This document shows, piece by piece, positions 10,410-61,120 of a stretch of 64,000 nucleotides of DNA; position 1 is the stretch's first letter; every line of letters starts with the position of its first letter. The translations under genes were made by a program, and so were the position numbers. The notes beneath the pieces were generated by a model that searched no databases, was not told the DNA's origin, and worked only from the letters and a program-made list of their open reading frames with translations. This stretch comes from Podarcis vaucheri (lineage: Eukaryota), in assembly GCA_965113315.1 (NCBI GenBank), contig OZ220374.1; one strand, written 5' to 3'.

Positions 10410-10539
10410 CAGGCATAGGCAAACTCGGCCCTCCAAATGTTTTGGGACAACTCCCATGATCCTTAGCTAACAGGACCAGTGAGGGATTATGGGAACTGTA
10501 GTCCCAAAACATCTGGCATGCCGAGTTTGCCTATGCCTG
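10410..10539. mobile_element. Short palindromic hAT MITE
   Basis: TIR CAGGCATAGGCAAACTCGGC / GCCGAGTTTGCCTATGCCTG. Confidence 0.85.
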
Positions 10540-11348
10540 CCGGAAGAAATATCAACAACCTCAGATATGCAGATGACACAACCTTGATGGCAGAAAGTGA
10601 AGAGGAATTAAAGAACCTTTTAATGAGGGTGAAAGAGGAGAGCGCAAAATATGGTCTGAAGCTCAACATCAAAAAAACGAAGATCATGGCCACTGGGCCC
10701 ATCACCTCCTGGCAAATAGATGGGGAAGAAATGGAGGCAGTGAGAGATTTTACTTTCTTGGGCTCCATGATCACTGCAGATGGTGACAGCAGTCACGAAA
10801 TTAAAAGACGCCTGCTCCTTGGGAGAAAGGCGATGGCAAACCTAGACAACATCTTAAAAAGCAGAGACATCACCTTGCCAACAAAGGTCCGTATAGTAAA
10901 AGCCATGGTTTTCCCAGTAGTGATGTATGGAAGTGAGAGCTGGACCATAAAGAAGGCTGATCGCCGAAGAATTGATGCTTTTGAATTATGGTGCTGGAGG
11001 AGACTCTTGAGAGTCCCATGGACTGCAAGAAGATCAAACCTCTCCATTCTGAAGGAAATCAGCCCTGAGTGCTCACTGGAAGGACAGATCGTGAAGCTGA
11101 GGCTCCAATACTTTGGCCACCTCATGAGAAGAGAGGACTCCCTGGAAAAGACCCTGATGTTGGGAAAGATGGAGGGCACAAGGAGAAGGGGACGACAGAG
11201 AATGAGATGGTTGGATGGTGTTCTTGAAGCTACTAGCATGAGTTTGATCAAACTGCGGGAGGCAGTGGAGGACAGAAGTGCCTGGCGTGCTCTGGTCCAT
11301 GGGGTCACGAAGAGTCGGACACGACTAAACGACTAAACAACAACAACA
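10540..11348 (+). mobile_element. BovB LINE, 5'-truncated, open RT frame
   Basis: GRNINNLRYADDTTL (RT YADD motif) through VTKSRTRLND*, (CAA)n tail; very similar to the copy at 1-489. Confidence 0.95.
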
Positions 11349-27823: not shown

Positions 27824-27962
27824 NNNNNNNNNNNNNNNNNNNNNNNNNNNNNNNNNNNNNNNNNNNNNNNNNNNNNNNNNNNNNNNNNNNNNNNNNNNNN
27901 NNNNNNNNNNNNNNNNNNNNNNNNNNNNNNNNNNNNNNNNNNNNNNNNNNNNNNNNNNNNNN
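27824..27962. other. Assembly gap (N run), intronic
   Basis: Run of N. Confidence 1.
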
Positions 27963-30670: not shown

Positions 30671-30844
30671 GATGCGCTAGCAGCTTTGGAAACTCCAGGG
30701 AGCTCTAATCCACAAAAAAGAAAACTGAGTACTCCTCTTTCAGAAGTCATTGGCAGGAACTTAAAAGTGGCTTTGGCAAACAGCTCTCGGCAAGCAGCTG
30801 CTCTCACTGCAAGCCCTCAGTTGAAAGTTGCAACTCAACAAGTG
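30671..30844 (+). CDS. TOPBP1: TOPBP1 coding exon 14
   Basis: [27 protein letters not shown]...ASPQLK. Confidence 0.92.
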
Positions 30845-40289: not shown

Positions 40290-40404
40290 GTCATTAGAGT
40301 AGACCAAATGACTGCTGAAGAACCAAAAAAAGAGTACAGATTCCAGCTGTCTTCTGTTCGCCCTCAGGCACGGATTGATTATTACCATATGATTGAAGAG
40401 CTGG
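40290..40404 (+). CDS. TOPBP1: TOPBP1 coding exon 22 (BRCT7 start)
   Basis: KKEYRFQLSSVRPQARIDYYHMIEEL. Confidence 0.92.
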
Positions 40405-40557
40405 GTAAGAAATCGGTGACCAGAGCATATCGGAGCTCCATCTGCTGGTGGTGGTTGTTGTTGTTGTGTTACAAAACACCTCATCACTTTCTATGTCTGA
40501 CCTTCCCCTAGTAGGAATTGCTTGTAAAAATAACTATATTTAAAATCCATTCTTTAG

Positions 40558-40721
40558 GTGGAGTGGTGCTTGAGAAGCAGTGCTTTGACCCTAGGTGTAC
40601 CCACACAATAGTGGGGCACCCTATTGGCAATGAGAAATTCTTGGCATCAATGGCAGCTGGAAAGTGGGTACTTCATTGTTCCTACCTGGATGCATGCAGA
40701 ACAGTACAATGCTTTCTACCG
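40558..40721 (+). CDS. TOPBP1: TOPBP1 coding exon 23 (BRCT7)
   Basis: [39 protein letters not shown]. Confidence 0.93.
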
Positions 40722-43553: not shown

Positions 43554-43715
43554 GTGCTGCCTGCTCATTCTGTCTCTGCCTTTAGAGAAGCCACCCATCT
43601 TTTTGCCGATTTTAACAAACTGAAGCCAGAGGATTTAAGAGTTAATTTAGGAGAGGCTTCTGCTCATGGAGTGAACTGCCTGAAGCCAGAATACATTGCT
43701 GACTATCTTATACAG
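43554..43715 (+). CDS. TOPBP1: TOPBP1 coding exon 26
   Basis: [25 protein letters not shown]...[13 protein letters not shown]. Confidence 0.93.
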
Positions 43716-44392
43716 GTCTGCATGCCAGTAGCACAATGTGACTTTTGTTACTTTTAAGAAAACTTGCCACATCTCAAAAATCAAAGCTGTTGCAGCAACT
43801 ATGTGCAGAATTTTGTGTGCCTAGAGCAAGGATTAGGAAACCTAGGGCAATTCCCAGTGGCAGTAGTCAGCATGGCCAATGGTCGGAGGTGATGTGAGTC
43901 AGGAACACCGGGAGGACCACAGGTTTCCCACAAGGCCTTTCCCTTTGTATGACCAATAGGAAAACTGTGTGTCTAGCGGTAGAAAAAGATAGAAAACCTG
44001 TTGCCTACCCAAGGCTATGGATTGTGCCTCAGGTGCAGAGATGGTGATGATTACTTTGCTCTTGACCCATTTTCTTCAGCTTAAAAGATGACATTTCAAG
44101 ACAAGTGGATGTTGTCTTTTTCTTTGCCAGAGCTGGTTAGAACAAAAAGCAAAAAGGGCTAGGTCTGCAGACAGGGCAGACTTTAGCCAGTATTCCTGCT
44201 GAAATGCTAGGGTAATAAGTAGGGAAAGAGAATGTCTGATAATGAATTCAAGGGTGCGATATTTGAGAGGAAAACTTAAAAGCCGGAAGCATGTGTTCCT
44301 ATTGTGGGTGGGTGTGCATGTCTTGGTAATGGGCACACCTTAAGAACGTCCTAGGTAAAGAAATGTGGGACTAGTGATGGTTTCGATCTTTA

Positions 44393-44426
44393 TAAACTAA
44401 ACTAAACTAAACTAAACTAAACTAAA
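44393..44426. repeat. (TAAAC)n pentanucleotide microsatellite next to the last TOPBP1 acceptor
   Basis: Direct reading. Confidence 0.9.
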
Positions 44427-44440
44427 ATCTTATTTTGAAG

Positions 44441-44482
44441 GAGCAACCACCTCAAATGGAAGGTTATCGTTTGCTGGTATGA
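44441..44482 (+). CDS. TOPBP1: TOPBP1 terminal coding exon, truncated (EQPPQMEGYRLLV*)
   Basis: Acceptor ttttgaag|; resembles the recalled human [11 protein letters not shown]; TGA at 44480-44482. Confidence 0.75.
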   Translation, partial: EQPPQMEGYRLLV

Positions 44483-44584
44483 AGATAGGCAGCAGCGTCT
44501 GGCAGAGAACATGAAACCGGGTTATCTTAGAAGCAGATATCTCCTGAAGAAACACGCCCGATAAAGCAAGCCTGAGTATGTTGA
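44483..44584 (+). pseudogene. Fossilised ancestral TOPBP1 C-terminal tail, in frame but interrupted by stops
   Basis: R*AAASGREHETGLS*KQISPEETRPIKQA*VC* aligns to the recalled human ...[26 protein letters not shown]. Confidence 0.75.
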
Positions 44585-44652: not shown

Positions 44653-45068
44653 TGTTTTTTGTAATATTTTGTGTATATTGCTTTTAAAATGAAATTTGGT
44701 TGCTCAGAAACTAGACTCCACTGATTTTTGCTGCCAGGGTAAAGTTGGTTCTTTGAATATTTTAAATTTATTCTTTATTTTCTTAGTAGATTTATGTCCC
44801 TTTGTGTGGAGCCCAGTCATGCTTCCCCATAGCATATTTTCATCCCTTTTCGGCTGCTTTTACATTTACTTCTAGAATAAAGGATGTTGGACTTACTGTG
44901 AAGGTTAGTTCTGCTCAGCTGGAGGTCAGTGATGGAGGATTCCTCCATTTCTGGAGGCTGGACTTCCAGAACCTTCTACCTGTAGGAGCTCCCTCAGTTC
45001 TGGAATGTACAGCATTCTTAATAAATTCTAGAAGCCAGGCACTTCAGTATATTGAATGAAATGCAGTA

Positions 45069-45423
45069 CAGTGGTGCCTCGCAAGACGAAATTAATTCGT
45101 TCCGCGAGTTTTGTCGTCTTGCGATTTTTTTCGTCTTGCGAAGCACGGTGTCGGAAAAGTTTTGGAAAAGCTTCAAAAATCACCAAAGTCTTCAAAAACC
45201 TCAAAAAAGGCTACCACACCACGTGCTATGAGTTGCTCCTCGAAGTCAAGTCGCAACTGTATTAACGGTTTTAAGAAAAAGGAAACAAACTTGCAAGACG
45301 TTTTCGTCTTGCGAAGCAAGCCCATAGGGAAAATCGTCTTGCGAAGCAACTCAAAAAACCAAAAACCCTTTCGTCTAGTGAGTTTTCCGTCTTGCGAGGC
45401 ATTCGTCTTGCGAGATACCACTG
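45069..45423. mobile_element. Tigger/pogo-like MITE (family C)
   Basis: Same ends as 31881-32214, TA TSD. Confidence 0.9.
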
Positions 45424-45994
45424 TATGTTTAATAAGAAGCATAGGAGGGCATTTACTCTCAGTGCAGAACTTTTCTTAGCCCCTGCCCTATTCAGTCATT
45501 ATTTGCATTTTGAGGCAACAAGAGACTGCTGGACCATGCCTTTAGCCCCCTGCCCTCATACTTAATAAATAGTAATTTTATTATTTATACCCCACCAACC
45601 TGGCTGTGTGGCTTACAGCATATACAAAAAAAAAAAAATATATAAAACACCAGACGTTTCCTGATTCTTGTGTTCTTCTGGCTTCCCATGGGCTAAGGGC
45701 AATAATTGACAGCAGCAAAACGGCTGTACTTTAGGCTCCCCATGTAGGTATCTCATTGCTGATTGCAGTAAACAGATGGGAAGCCAGGAGCCATTTGACA
45801 ATGAGAGCAGGGCTAAAGGTGTGCCCTGGAAACTGCTTGCTACTCGCAGAGTAATGATTGAAAAAGGCTCAGCTAGTGCAACCTGAACAAGTTTTGAGGG
45901 GAGGAAATAGCGTATTGTATCCTACTTTCCAAATGTTTCTGGGTAGAATGCTTCTGTTCAGGATTTCAGCTGCTCCATTCCACCACCACCCCTT

Positions 45995-46066: not shown

Positions 46067-46742
46067 GTGAAATCAGCTTTCCCCCCTTAATATATTGATT
46101 TTCCATTGATTTATTTTGACAGCACTCGCTTCTGTCACCAGGTACATTTTCCCCCTAACCCCCTTTTTTGCTATTCTGCTGGAGAGGAAATGACCTGTTC
46201 ATACTTTTGAGGTTCTTTCTACAAAATTTAAGATCTGTAAGCCACTCTCCCTCCTTCCTATGCAACCATCCAGATTCATTCTGCCAAGCAGCTCCTCTCA
46301 ACATTCCATGCCATTTATCCTAATTGGACTGTTGTTGGAGGGACTCCCCCCACCCCATAGACTACCTAACCACTGTGAGAACAAGATACTGCATTAGATG
46401 GATCTTTGGCCTGATGAACAGGGCTCTTACGTTCTTAAAGAAAAATAGTGTCTCATTGTTCACAAGTCTCTATGTAGTTAGTATGACCAGGGGGTGTTAA
46501 GACACATGTTAACAATGGACAGTTCCTTATTTTAAACCAGAGATGGGGGACCTGTGACCTCACCCCCAATGTTGTTGGGATTCTAATTCTCATAAACACT
46601 AGAATGATCAACCAGCAAGGGGTGGTAGGAGTGTGCCCCAGAAACATGTCGGGGGGGGCACAGGTTCCCCCATCCTGGCTTTAAACATACACTTAAAAAC
46701 AGTAGATCATACCAGAGGGATAACAAACAGTGTGAACATAAG

Positions 46743-46748
46743 TTTATT
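46743..46748 (-). terminator. Candidate distal CDV3 poly(A) signal AATAAA
   Basis: Minus strand reads TTTTTTTGTAAACTCCCTGAATGAAATAAAC at the end of a repeat-poor, UTR-like tract. Confidence 0.45.
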
Positions 46749-49210
46749 TCATTCAGGGAGTTTACAAAAAAAAATAATGATAATTGATCTTAAGTAATTT
46801 CCATGCAAAACCCAAAAACCTTGTTAATACAATTAGAGCTGCACAGTTAATCACATAAAACCAGAAAGGGGATGCATAAAGATTGAAAACTCAACCATGC
46901 CTTCTTGCAAAGTCCATTGTTACATGATCCATACATTTAAATAATGTTTTGTAAAGAAGCCTTCTATAGTAGTAGCAAAATACTGTAATGAAAAAGTTGA
47001 ATAAGGTGACAGAATCAGCCATCAGACGTTGGCCGATTAGTTATATGTTGTGCACTTCTATAGCACCTTCCATCAGGAAAACTCAAAAGCATTTTACAAT
47101 GAAGTCAGCCTCACAACACCCCTGTGAGGTAGGGAAGCATTATCTTTACAGCCTAGAAAACAGAGGCACAACCAGACTTCCATCCACTCCTATGCCATAC
47201 TTGCAGCAGACTATGCTTTCATCCTTGCAATGGTTTGGGATCAGATTCTTTTCATTGATGTTCATGGACTTGCCCTTGGCAAGTATGTTAACATTTTAAA
47301 TCGAAGCAAGTGGTCTATATACCAGCAACGTTTATGGTAATTCATATTCTAATAGAAATGTCAAACTTTTTTTAGTTCTTAAAGTTACTTTATATATATT
47401 TAGAAGTAACTAATCTTTCATTTTAGTAACCCCCATTTACCTAATCGCAGCTTGAAGGCTCTGGAGGTTCATATTTGCAGAGATAATACATCATCCTAAA
47501 GTATTTCTTCCAATTGTTACTTTCCTCTGATAACTATTCTACAGATTTGGCAGAATAGGAATGACAGAATTCTAAAGTTCTTATTACAGGTTGGGGGCAC
47601 TTTTCAAATACTCTCCTCTATATGAAGCTTCATATAGGGCCTGGCAAGACCCTATATATTTTTGTTTTCTACTTATGGGGAATGTGGAGGATCATTAAAA
47701 ATACAAGCTACCCACCCCTGCACATAGAGCTGGTATGATTTATTCTTCAGAATTTTCTGAGTCCTCTATGAGCAATTCAAGTATTTTTCTGCAGTTCCTT
47801 TTTAGTATCTGTGTTGTTTCAGACACATTGAATAAAAATGCAGTTTTATAGCTGCATCAGTGCTTTGGGACAAGATTACCTCAAGGATGAAGTGAATCAA
47901 TTCCTGGGCATTTTTATGTAGGTATTATGTAAAATAAGGATATTGCTTTCCAGGATAGAATTCTTTTACATTTTGCACCTTTTAGTCTTACTCCCCAGGA
48001 AAGTTTCATGTAATGCTTACTATCAACTTTTCTTTATGTGGGCTCTTTTGAGCTAATAAAACTATACAAAGAAGCCTACTCAATGTGGCATATATTTTTG
48101 CACTTGGATTTTTGCCTACCTTGCTTTAAAAACAGCTTCATGAAAACTATCAGTTCTGACTCTATAGTTATCTAGGCCTAGGCACAGTTTATCCAAAATA
48201 ATGCAGATTTTGTTTCACTCTTCTAACATTACTTGCAGCCGTCCACACTTTCAGCTATAACATGGATTATCAGGGATACAGCAGTCTAAGGCCTCATCAC
48301 TAAACTTTTCCACATACAGGTCCCACTGAAGTCAAGTATTAAGAGTATATAGAAGACACTGTCTATGCAGACATGGCTTTAACAGTACAGCCTGACAGGT
48401 GGTGGTGGGAAGCTGAGGAATGACCCTGCTCACCTGATGCTAACATACTGGATCTCATATCTGAATGGGAGCCTATGCATGTAGAACCCAATACCTCCAA
48501 GTCCTTGGAGTAAAAATTGTGCTATTTGGGCCTATGCAGGTTGGGCAATATGCACATAGTCCCCTATTCAAATGAGACTCCAAATATACAGGTATCAAGC
48601 AGATGCACCAGCAGTGCAAGGGCACTCATGACCCCCTAAAGTTTGTGAGTGCTGCTGTTAAGAGCCACATCTGCATAAAGCTTGCATTGCAACCACACCA
48701 TTATAGCATTTGTACAGACGCCTCTGAAAGTGATGCAAAGGCTCTCAGGCACTCCTAATGCTTCCATGGAATGAACACCCACTCCATAGGATCTCTTTAC
48801 CATGCATCACAGATGCATTAAAAATGATCCAACCATGTTTGGAATAAAAAGCTCTACCATCAACACATATTTCTTGTTATGCTTTCAAAAGTTCAGATTA
48901 AAACCCTATTTTATTTAAGCCTGGCTTATTTGACCCTCACATTCCTTTCTTTGCGTGAAATTGGCTTTCAAGTGCTTTACTGAATAGGTTACAACTATTA
49001 CGCCTGCTTTGAACAAGATGATGTCATGAACATTATAAAGTGTCAATAATGCAGTAATACAACTAAATATTTTTATGACCAATTACAAATATGGTGCATG
49101 TTCTGCCAAAAGTCAGTCTTACGTCCATTCACAGAATAGCTACTGGAACACAAATAGAAAATGGATTGCACAAGACCAGGTTTGATTTCGGGGATAGAAA
49201 TGTTCCTATT

Positions 49211-59499: not shown

Positions 59500-61120
59500 G
59501 AACATGCCGGGGGTGGCGTGGGTGGGGGCGCAAGACGACTATTTCAAGCCCATTGATTTGGGCTCCACATCGGATATCTACTTATCGCTAAATACGAGAG
59601 TCCTAAACTCTGCCCTCGTTCCCACCCCATCCGCCGGGAGGGTTAAGGAGTGACCGATGGGTGCGACTTCCACGCGCCCCACGCCAAGGCCACGGCGGCC
59701 GGGCTGACCCCGCAAAGGCGCCCTCTGCTGACAGGAAGTCACCAACGCCCACAGGAAGCCGATAATTCCCTACTTCTCTCTCTCTCTCACCGCCATCCCC
59801 CCCCCCACGCCGCCCCATGACTGGTCATGCTGGAACCCACCCGGCTCAGCCCCGCAGCCGCCGCCCTGCCTGCTCACCTTAATCCCACCCTTCGTCGCGG
59901 CGGCGTGGGCATTGGAGGCCGTCCCGGAGCCGCCCTCGCCCTGCCGGCTCCCCCCGCCCCCACCCCCGCCAGAAGCGTTGGCAGGGGCGTTGTGCGAGGC
60001 CGCCGAGGAGGCGGCCGTTGCGGAGGCGGCCCCCCGGCTGCTCTTCTCTTTCCGCTTCTTCTTGTCCCGCTTCGCGAAAAAGTCGTCCAAGCTCCTTTCC
60101 TCAGTCTCGGCCATGGCGGCGGCAGAAGCGGCGGCTCCTCCTCGCGCTCCGGTTCAAACCGGTTGTGGCTGACGGGACGTGTCTTCCTCGCGCCTGACGG
60201 CGGTTGGGCGCCTACCAAGCCGACGCGCTGCGCCGGGGGCGGGGGAGTAGGCGAGCGGGCGAGCGACCCCCTCACAGGTGCCCACCAACAGCAGCCCTCA
60301 CGTGCGCCTCAATGGGGGTGGCAGTCGCTCGCCCCTTCCGCGGCAGGCGAATGGTACAGTCCTCAAACCGCCAGCTGCCCGCGCGCCGGACGCCTCTCTC
60401 CCTCCTCAGCTCACGCGGCGGCGGCGGCTTCCGCTCTCCACGTTGGTGGCCGCCGCTTGACACAGCCAAAGGAAAAGTGGGGGGCGAAGGAAGAGAGGAG
60501 GTGGGGGCGGAGCCAAGCGGCAGGAGCGTTTTCTAACGTGGCACCTTATTGGGCATGGCGGCGCAGAGGCGGGAGGCCGCGCGCGCCTCCTTCCGCCGGG
60601 GCCAACCCGCCCAAAGGGAACAAACGGCCCGGGAGCCAATGAGAGGCAAAGGAGGCCTCGGTGACGAACTTTGGGTGCGGCAGAAGCGTCAGCAGCCCCG
60701 TCTGTGATTGGCCCGGCGGCCCGGAATGTGGGAGGAGAGAGAAGGCAGAGGGAGTGCGCTTGCGCGAAGTCGACGCCTTTGGGCGCTCCGGGAGTGACGA
60801 GGCAGTACAGCGCGGGCAGATGTTCGTTACGGGCCAGGCTTTGATCTTTCTGCTCTCCCTCAGCGCAGAGATAGCGGGCCTTGGTTCTACGCGCGCTTTT
60901 TTTTTTACTCGCCTTCCTTCTGAGGGGGGCGCGTTGAGCCCTCGAGATGCTGCCGCCCTCCCCTTCTGACGGGATTCGGCAGCTGCGCACGACAGGCAGA
61001 AACGCAACCGGTGCAGCTGCGCCCCTTGCCTCTCGTGAGGGAGAAAAACCGCACCTGCGGGGTTGGCTTCTTTAGGGTGTTTATATCCTGCTCCTCAGCC
61101 AAAAAGACCCCCGCAGCGAC
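59500..61120 (-). promoter_or_regulatory. CDV3 CpG island and promoter
   Basis: Very CpG-rich; GC box near 60503, CCAAT boxes near 60548, 60636 and 60707. Confidence 0.8.
59878..60114 (-). CDS. CDV3: CDV3 coding exon 1
   Basis: MAETEERSLDDFFAKRDKKKRKEK...; Kozak GCCGCCATGG; donor AAG|GTGAGC. Confidence 0.95.

Follow-up and report, generated by a model that had tools for sequence, protein, structure and literature searches.

Background

The C-terminal basic signal of TopBP1 is treated as the nuclear import signal of the protein. Human TopBP1 deprived of its last 17 residues is 'almost exclusively cytoplasmic' (PMC4539992), and the Xenopus signal is RKRK, bound by importin beta, according to the passage of PMC5955436 that cites Bai et al. 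2014. In the stretch of DNA analysed here, 64,000 nucleotides of contig OZ220374.1 from Podarcis vaucheri (hereafter the window), the last coding exon of TOPBP1 carries in-frame stops where this signal is expected. How has the signal been lost, is the gene still a working one, and by which route could its product enter the nucleus? An earlier note, made from the letters of the window, had described the exon as decaying, with its tail fossilised behind four in-frame stops. From the analysis below we put the probability at about 0.8 that a micro-inversion truncated TOPBP1 in an ancestor of Lacertidae and Rhineura, that the gene is otherwise functional and that the truncated protein is made.

Gene structure and the last exon

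The exons of the window were searched singly, and the full-length comparisons were made with database proteins of other lacertids. A tblastn comparison with Sphenodon, Podarcis and Lacerta TOPBP1 gave a collinear multi-BRCT series over the full length of the protein, that is a TOPBP1 orthologue with 27 coding exons at 17303-44479. Single TOPBP1 exons gave BRCT matches in Pfam, and matches to TopBP1 BRCT7/8 were found in PDB. The window is around 94-100% identical to the lacertid TOPBP1 proteins over most exons, and identical to none of them. The 26 coding exons upstream of the last one (17303-43715) have the order found in TOPBP1. All 26 had been reported as open, and 24 are so by direct translation, while for exons 7 and 18 the statement is carried by ungapped tblastn matches covering them. 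A run of N at 27824-27962 is intronic in TOPBP1.

Exon 26 closes on a complete codon, and the acceptor AG of the last exon is located at 44439-44440. Translation in frame 1 from 44441 reproduces exactly the string given previously, with stops at codons 14, 16, 30, 45 and 48. The positions are collected in Table 1. The final three residues of EQPPQMEGYRLLV, the 13 codons that precede the first stop, are encoded by the segment that we describe below as inverted, read on its new sense strand. Every lesion falls 3' of the stop in use, the upstream exons are intact and the gene is transcribed, which is not the picture of a unitary pseudogene; the gene in the window is an orthologous, functional TOPBP1.

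Table 1. Features of TOPBP1 with their positions in the window.
Feature	Position	Strand	Remark
Internal QKRK, coding exon 14, BRCT5-6 linker; candidate replacement NLS	30713-30724	+	Derived in Lacertidae and Rhineura
Exons 22-23 (BRCT7), clade-specific changes beside the phosphopeptide pocket	40290-40718	+	Gly at 40626-40628 for the human R1314 equivalent
Exon 24 (BRCT7-8 linker), clade-specific Y>F and divergent loop	41368-41508	+	
Coding exon 26 (end of BRCT8)	43554-43715	+	Phase 0 end ..ADYLIQ; donor gt at 43716-43717
Last exon, coding part, 13 codons EQPPQMEGYRLLV	44441-44479	+	Identical RefSeq protein end in Podarcis muralis
Micro-inversion	44470-44506		Minimum 35 bp (44471-44505), maximum 37 bp; also contains the second stop, TAG 44486-44488 (codon 16)
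Stop codon in use, TGA (codon 14), attributed to the inversion	44480-44482	+	
Collinear fossil, tail codons 23-48, now 3'UTR	44507-44584	+	Includes TAG 44528-44530 (codon 30), TGA 44573-44575 (codon 45) and the ancestral TGA 44582-44584 (codon 48)
Likely poly(A) signal ATTAAA	44647-44652	+	Inferred; RNA depth 0 after 44754

In the last intron, an (AAACT)n microsatellite occupies 44397-44427, 13-43 bp upstream of the acceptor, and 44387-44437 was skipped as a repeat in the read mapping. Just downstream of the 3' end of TOPBP1 lies a very high-copy interspersed repeat (44952-45580) with a contig depth sum of 10^5-10^6 and abundant RNA from both strands. Further on, opposite-strand RNA over 46725-47700 (depth 11-50) belongs to a convergent neighbour gene. 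A minus-strand ORF at 59770-60114, beginning with MAETEERSLDDFFAKRDKKK, gave no match in Pfam; it resembles the first exon of CDV3, and if it is this gene, its tail-to-tail arrangement with TOPBP1 would be conserved synteny. Upstream of TOPBP1, at 10467-11333 on the plus strand, there is a LINE fragment with an open frame of 289 amino acids (RVT_1, E 2e-10).

Homology of the stop-containing tail

We judged the homology of the tail against database proteins, and not against the human tail given in the earlier note; human sequence was used only through alignments to PDB chains. One search with exon 26 and two region searches retrieved TOPBP1 of birds, turtles, crocodilians, tuatara, amphibians and 27 squamate species, where the squamates were reached via a region of the Sphenodon protein in which birds diverge more. 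The live tails have 45-49 residues and share a common pattern, which comprises YxLPEAxxYLQNSK and, further on, a stretch of 21 residues.

Codons 14-47 of the exon agree with the tail of Elgaria at 12 of 34 positions in an ungapped alignment. Shuffled sequences are expected to reach 2.2, and none of 20,000 reached 12. For 12 other sauropsids the agreement is 7-11 of 34. The fossil shows no net indel, and its final stop is in register. With these counts, the earlier claims that the tail is a recognisable fossil, and that its length and frame match those of an intact exon, are upheld on live tails. The conserved element that follows BRCT8 in these tails, (Q/R)KRK-x9-KRSR, persists only as a broken fossil, where QKRK has become stop-KQI and KRSR has become KQA-stop. 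The stop at codon 30 aligns to Q and the stop at codon 45 to R, and both look like later point changes in the present 3'UTR.

An inverted segment within the exon

When the whole window was searched with the live tails by permissive tblastn, the expected forward match was joined by a second one inside the same exon, on the minus strand. On the opposite strand, 44470-44505 encodes LPDAAAYLHTSK, where the ancestral sequence is LPEAAAYLQNSK. Compared with the tails of Elgaria, Python and Thamnophis, LPDAAAYLHTSK agrees at 9 of 12 positions, whereas the forward reading agrees at 1 of 12. The three mismatches (D/E, H/Q and T/N) are each one base change away. The inverted 12-mer is the sole match of at least 7/12 when some 128,000 six-frame positions of the window are compared, and it is found exactly in place. 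When 44470-44506 is read on the other strand the exon runs ..YR-LPDAAAYLHTSK-EHETGLS.., collinear with the live tails. An in-place reverse complement, collinear flanks and an unchanged length are thus all present, as judged against the protein tails of other species, and by this comparison codons 11-22 are inverted and not collinear with the ancestral tail.

The exact breakpoints are ambiguous, because the end bases t/a are complementary. A search for inverted repeats at the breakpoints gave nothing meaningful. The first two stops, at codons 14 and 16, arose because one inversion of 35-37 bp switched the strands of this segment. That the inversion left the length unchanged explains both the absence of a net indel and the preserved frame of the fossil downstream of it. 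One of the earlier claims has to be divided at this point. Transition decay had been proposed for all four premature stops; point changes are retained for codons 30 and 45, and the stops at codons 14 and 16 are better assigned to a single inversion. Poor alignment of 44483-44584 to orthologous tails had been named as a ground for refutation; the fossil is collinear with them from 44507 onwards, and codons 11-22 are inverted.

Distribution of the truncation

Codon 13 of the last exon is also the last codon of the RefSeq TOPBP1 proteins of five lacertids (Podarcis muralis, P. raffonei, P. lilfordi, Lacerta agilis and Zootoca vivipara) and of the amphisbaenian Rhineura floridana, as expected from the proposal that the C-terminal NLS tail has been lost in the lineage. 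The truncated RefSeq models of Podarcis, Lacerta, Zootoca and Rhineura have 1469-1476 amino acids. Their ends are ..YRLLV, ..YRLLL or ..YRLPL in lacertids and ..YRLLF in Rhineura. For the relatives we could use these protein ends for a comparison with the inversion. The Rhineura end, LLF-stop, can correspond to just four tetrapeptides when it is back-translated on the other strand, and the ancestral QNSK is among them. The opposite-strand readings allowed for the others include HNSK for LLL-stop of Lacerta, HNGK for LPL-stop of Zootoca and HTSK for LLV-stop of Podarcis and the window. These ends fit the same inversion, and from them we infer that it is common to Lacertidae and Rhineura.

Outside this clade the tail is intact in the teiid Salvator, in 20 other squamates, and in Sphenodon, turtles, crocodilians, birds and amphibians. 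The squamates with an intact tail include geckos, a skink, a cordylid, anguimorphs, iguanians and nearly all snake models. The models that have no tail, from Candoia, Erythrolamprus and one of Varanus, end early or in unrelated sequence. An end of the form KRK..K(K/R)x(K/R) is present in 145 of 168 TOPBP1 sequences of at least 1300 amino acids. Of the 23 without it, 15 are from Lacertidae or Rhineura and two are from birds with one-residue variants, and the rest have early or unrelated ends. Some deposited P. lilfordi TOPBP1 models (P0196 and P0199) run past the donor of exon 26 into the intron for a stretch of 15 residues, and look like annotation artefacts or isoforms with intron retention. 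A short C-terminal fragment from Crotalus (246 aa) is missing an exon.

Rhineura is sister to Lacertidae, with a disputed split date (PMC2719621), and one recent timetree dates the split between Teiidae and Lacertidae to about 188 Ma (PMC12961865). As the truncation is found in lacertids and Rhineura and the tail is found in Salvator, the event falls on the stem between the Teiidae-Lacertidae and the Lacertidae-Rhineura splits. Furthermore, its presence in five other lacertids and in Rhineura means that it predates the split of Lacertidae and Amphisbaenia. The exon can for this reason not be said to be decaying as a current process: 13 of its codons are in normal use, and the rest is 3'UTR.

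The sequence of events would then be as follows. In an ancestor shared by Lacertidae and at least Rhineura, 35-37 bp within the last exon would have been inverted in place. The inverted segment would have held the 12 codons LPEAAAYLQNSK, and its new sense strand would have read LLV-stop-R-stop. The protein would from then on have ended 13 residues into the last exon, missing 34 residues that include the (Q/R)KRK-x9-KRSR import motif. Nonsense-mediated decay is not expected for a stop in the last exon, so the transcript would have escaped it and a truncated protein would have been produced. With its length preserved, the downstream tail would have been left in frame as a 3'UTR fossil, where two more stops would have been gained later.

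Expression and independent sequence

Stranded RNA reads from a related species cover exons 25 and 26 and the last exon at a depth of 2-5, on one strand. The coverage ends by about 44.75 kb, and the absence of depth beyond 44754 agrees with the poly(A) signal ATTAAA given in Table 1. DNA contigs (Logan) from another sample and from another related species list no difference in 44441-44584, and RNA reads from a third source list none in the last exon. Position 43579 is C in the window (Ala, ..HSVSAF..) and T (Val) in both DNA runs and in both RNA runs; the Ala is shared with Lacerta agilis.

An error of assembly or sequencing, or an allele that is private or polymorphic, would also place stops in this exon. 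Nothing speaks for an error beyond the general prior for any single assembly, and we consider the probability of this explanation negligible, as the protein ends at one and the same codon in six species with independent assemblies and the contigs and RNA reads of other samples and other species concur. The earlier note had likewise called sequencing error unlikely.

An alternative terminal exon, or a second copy of TOPBP1, could provide the tail with its NLS. The analysis is based on one window and on RNA of low depth, and the joint 43715>44441 falls outside the joints displayed from the RNA mapping, which leaves some room for such a product. Against it, the 64 kb window contains no second tail-like sequence on either strand, and downstream RNA on the plus strand was seen only at the high-copy repeat. 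In addition, all RefSeq isoforms from five species end at this stop, and the protein database holds a single cluster of lacertid TOPBP1. A substitute tail of this kind is very improbable.

Changes in BRCT7/8 on the same branch

When scaled to the remainder of the protein, the divergence of BRCT7/8 from Sphenodon amounts to 1.0-1.2 in the clade and to 0.68-0.87 in other squamates. Ten substitutions are common to all five clade sequences at columns where the other 19 sequences show at least 90% conservation. All ten are located in BRCT7/8, so that 10 of 130 conserved columns are affected in these domains and 0 of 604 in the rest of the protein. Fisher's test gives p = 2e-8, and the result does not depend on the conservation threshold. 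The same pattern was absent in every other squamate clade.

We placed the changes on human BRCT7/8 chains from PDB, with a numbering derived from the spacing of the published S1273, R1280, R1314 and K1317. The mapped changes include L1275V, N1276R, E1279A, L1313I, R1314G, R1331C and E1335D. The residues that bind phosphate in BRCT7 (human S1273/S1274, R1280 and K1317) are kept, as seen in FQLSS..QAR and NEKF. The Arg for specificity at +3/+4 (human R1314) is replaced, with GHPIGNEK in the clade versus GHPLRNEK in 19 of 19 other tetrapods aligned. In human, R1314 helps to form the +3/+4 pocket and is required for the binding of BACH1 and PHF8 (PMC7641741, PMC13440399). Lacertids and Rhineura share all ten derived states, which argues for a shifted optimum rather than for decay. 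Residues that line the BRCT7 phosphopeptide groove changed on this branch and were fixed thereafter, and this points to a C-terminal module that has been re-tuned and is not decaying. The changes also hint that BRCT7/8 of these animals binds FANCJ, PHF8 and similar partners with a different specificity.

The same data bear on whether TOPBP1 as a whole is losing function, as an incipient pseudogene in which the BRCT7 changes reflect relaxed constraint. The raised relative divergence of BRCT7/8 and the loss of the pocket Arg for BACH1 and PHF8 would be in line with this. They are outweighed by the conservation of the ten derived states since the lacertid-Rhineura split, by the retained phosphate-binding Ser-Ser, Arg and Lys, and by the lack of any clade-specific change in the 604 conserved N-terminal columns. 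Together with upstream exons that are intact (24 open, two ungapped) and a gene that is transcribed, this makes a general loss of function highly improbable.

In a predicted complex of Elgaria BRCT7/8 with its own tail of 47 residues, a control outscored the pair, so the prediction speaks neither for nor against a docking of the lost tail on the remodelled domains. The TOPBP1-A-like protein of Odontesthes bonariensis (P0207) matched Rhineura BRCT7/8 with 476 bits and 59% identity, above the lacertids, maybe through repeated matching stretches.

Nuclear import and the internal QKRK

The 34 residues that are lost from the truncated TOPBP1 include both basic clusters. For a possible replacement, 24 full-length TOPBP1 proteins were aligned and scanned for basic clusters. 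A strict scan with K(K/R)x(K/R) for new internal NLSs found none, and a looser scan for basic clusters showed a change in coding exon 14. At this site the ancestral Q(K/R)xRK has become P(Q/R)KRK in the clade, the one clade-specific difference in a basic cluster. The ancestral NQRNRKLSTPL, just after a conserved stretch of ten residues, has been replaced by another sequence of 11 residues in lacertids; Podarcis muralis has KPQKRKL here, and Rhineura has its own form of 11 residues. The QKRK of coding exon 14, which the earlier note had proposed as a fallback for import, is thus present and, additionally, derived and specific to the clade.

A contiguous KRK at this site is found in 17 of 17 sequences from Lacertidae and Rhineura and, among about 158 other tetrapod sequences (about 175 in total), only in Python. 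The new tetrapeptide is the same as the lost one, being QKRK in lacertids and RKRK in Rhineura. From these alignments, nuclear import may now proceed via the internal P(Q/R)KRK, made on the same stem branch, with the C-terminal signal either redundant or replaced; we hold this to be a serious candidate at somewhat less than even odds.

The truncation could also be real and import independent of the QKRK in exon 14, through piggy-back transport on a partner, an unrecognised signal or access to chromatin in mitosis. QKRK was gained by a single substitution event on a single branch, which may be a coincidence, and Python has KRK at this site yet an intact tail. Furthermore, a cytoplasmic human mutant without the NLS still rescued mitotic DNA synthesis in DT40 cells after breakdown of the nuclear envelope (PMC4539992), and a basic stretch of ten residues occurs in the BRCT7-8 linker of all species. 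Against coincidence stand the identity of the new tetrapeptide with the lost one and its fixation throughout the clade sequences. It is also established that the S-phase functions of TOPBP1 require access to the nucleus in interphase. An import route of this kind is a tangible alternative, although we think the odds are against it.

If the internal signal is the functional one, the inversion may have been tolerated because (Q/R)KRK had already arisen in the BRCT5-6 linker, a relocation of the NLS that would have been accompanied by a re-specified BRCT7 groove (R1314G and its neighbours). Under the same proposal the inversion would also be a rare genomic change in favour of the molecular clade Lacertidae plus Amphisbaenia. 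We offer this combined scenario tentatively, as something less probable than not.

Comparison with known systems

The lizard gene resembles the engineered NLS mutants of TopBP1, that is the human protein with its last 17 residues deleted (PMC4539992) and the mutant of the Xenopus motif (Bai et al. 2014, in the part of PMC5955436 that refers to it), in that the C-terminal importin-dependent basic motif is missing. It differs from these laboratory mutants by being natural and fixed in a clade for tens to more than 100 million years, with 34 residues gone from a gene that is conserved and expressed. The laboratory mutants are cytoplasmic. The clade has been without the signal since at least the Lacertidae-Rhineura split, the date of which is disputed, and it can be regarded as a natural experiment in the nuclear entry of an essential scaffold, with the derived internal QKRK as a testable candidate.

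RefSeq TOPBP1 proteins of Podarcis, Lacerta, Zootoca and Rhineura have the same end as the window, and the truncated product is in this sense already part of public annotation. In the literature searched, we found no paper that links TOPBP1 with lacertids, and none that mentions the loss of the tail, the inversion, the QKRK of exon 14 or the substitutions in BRCT7.

Micro-inversions of less than 100 bp serve as rare genomic changes in vertebrate phylogeny. The present one is a discrete character for squamate systematics, whose state can be read from any genome; if confirmed in amphisbaenian DNA, it marks Lacertidae plus Amphisbaenia. It is like known micro-inversions in being an in-place reverse complement with collinear flanks and the same length, and unlike them in lying within a coding exon of an essential gene, where it creates a stop that is in use.
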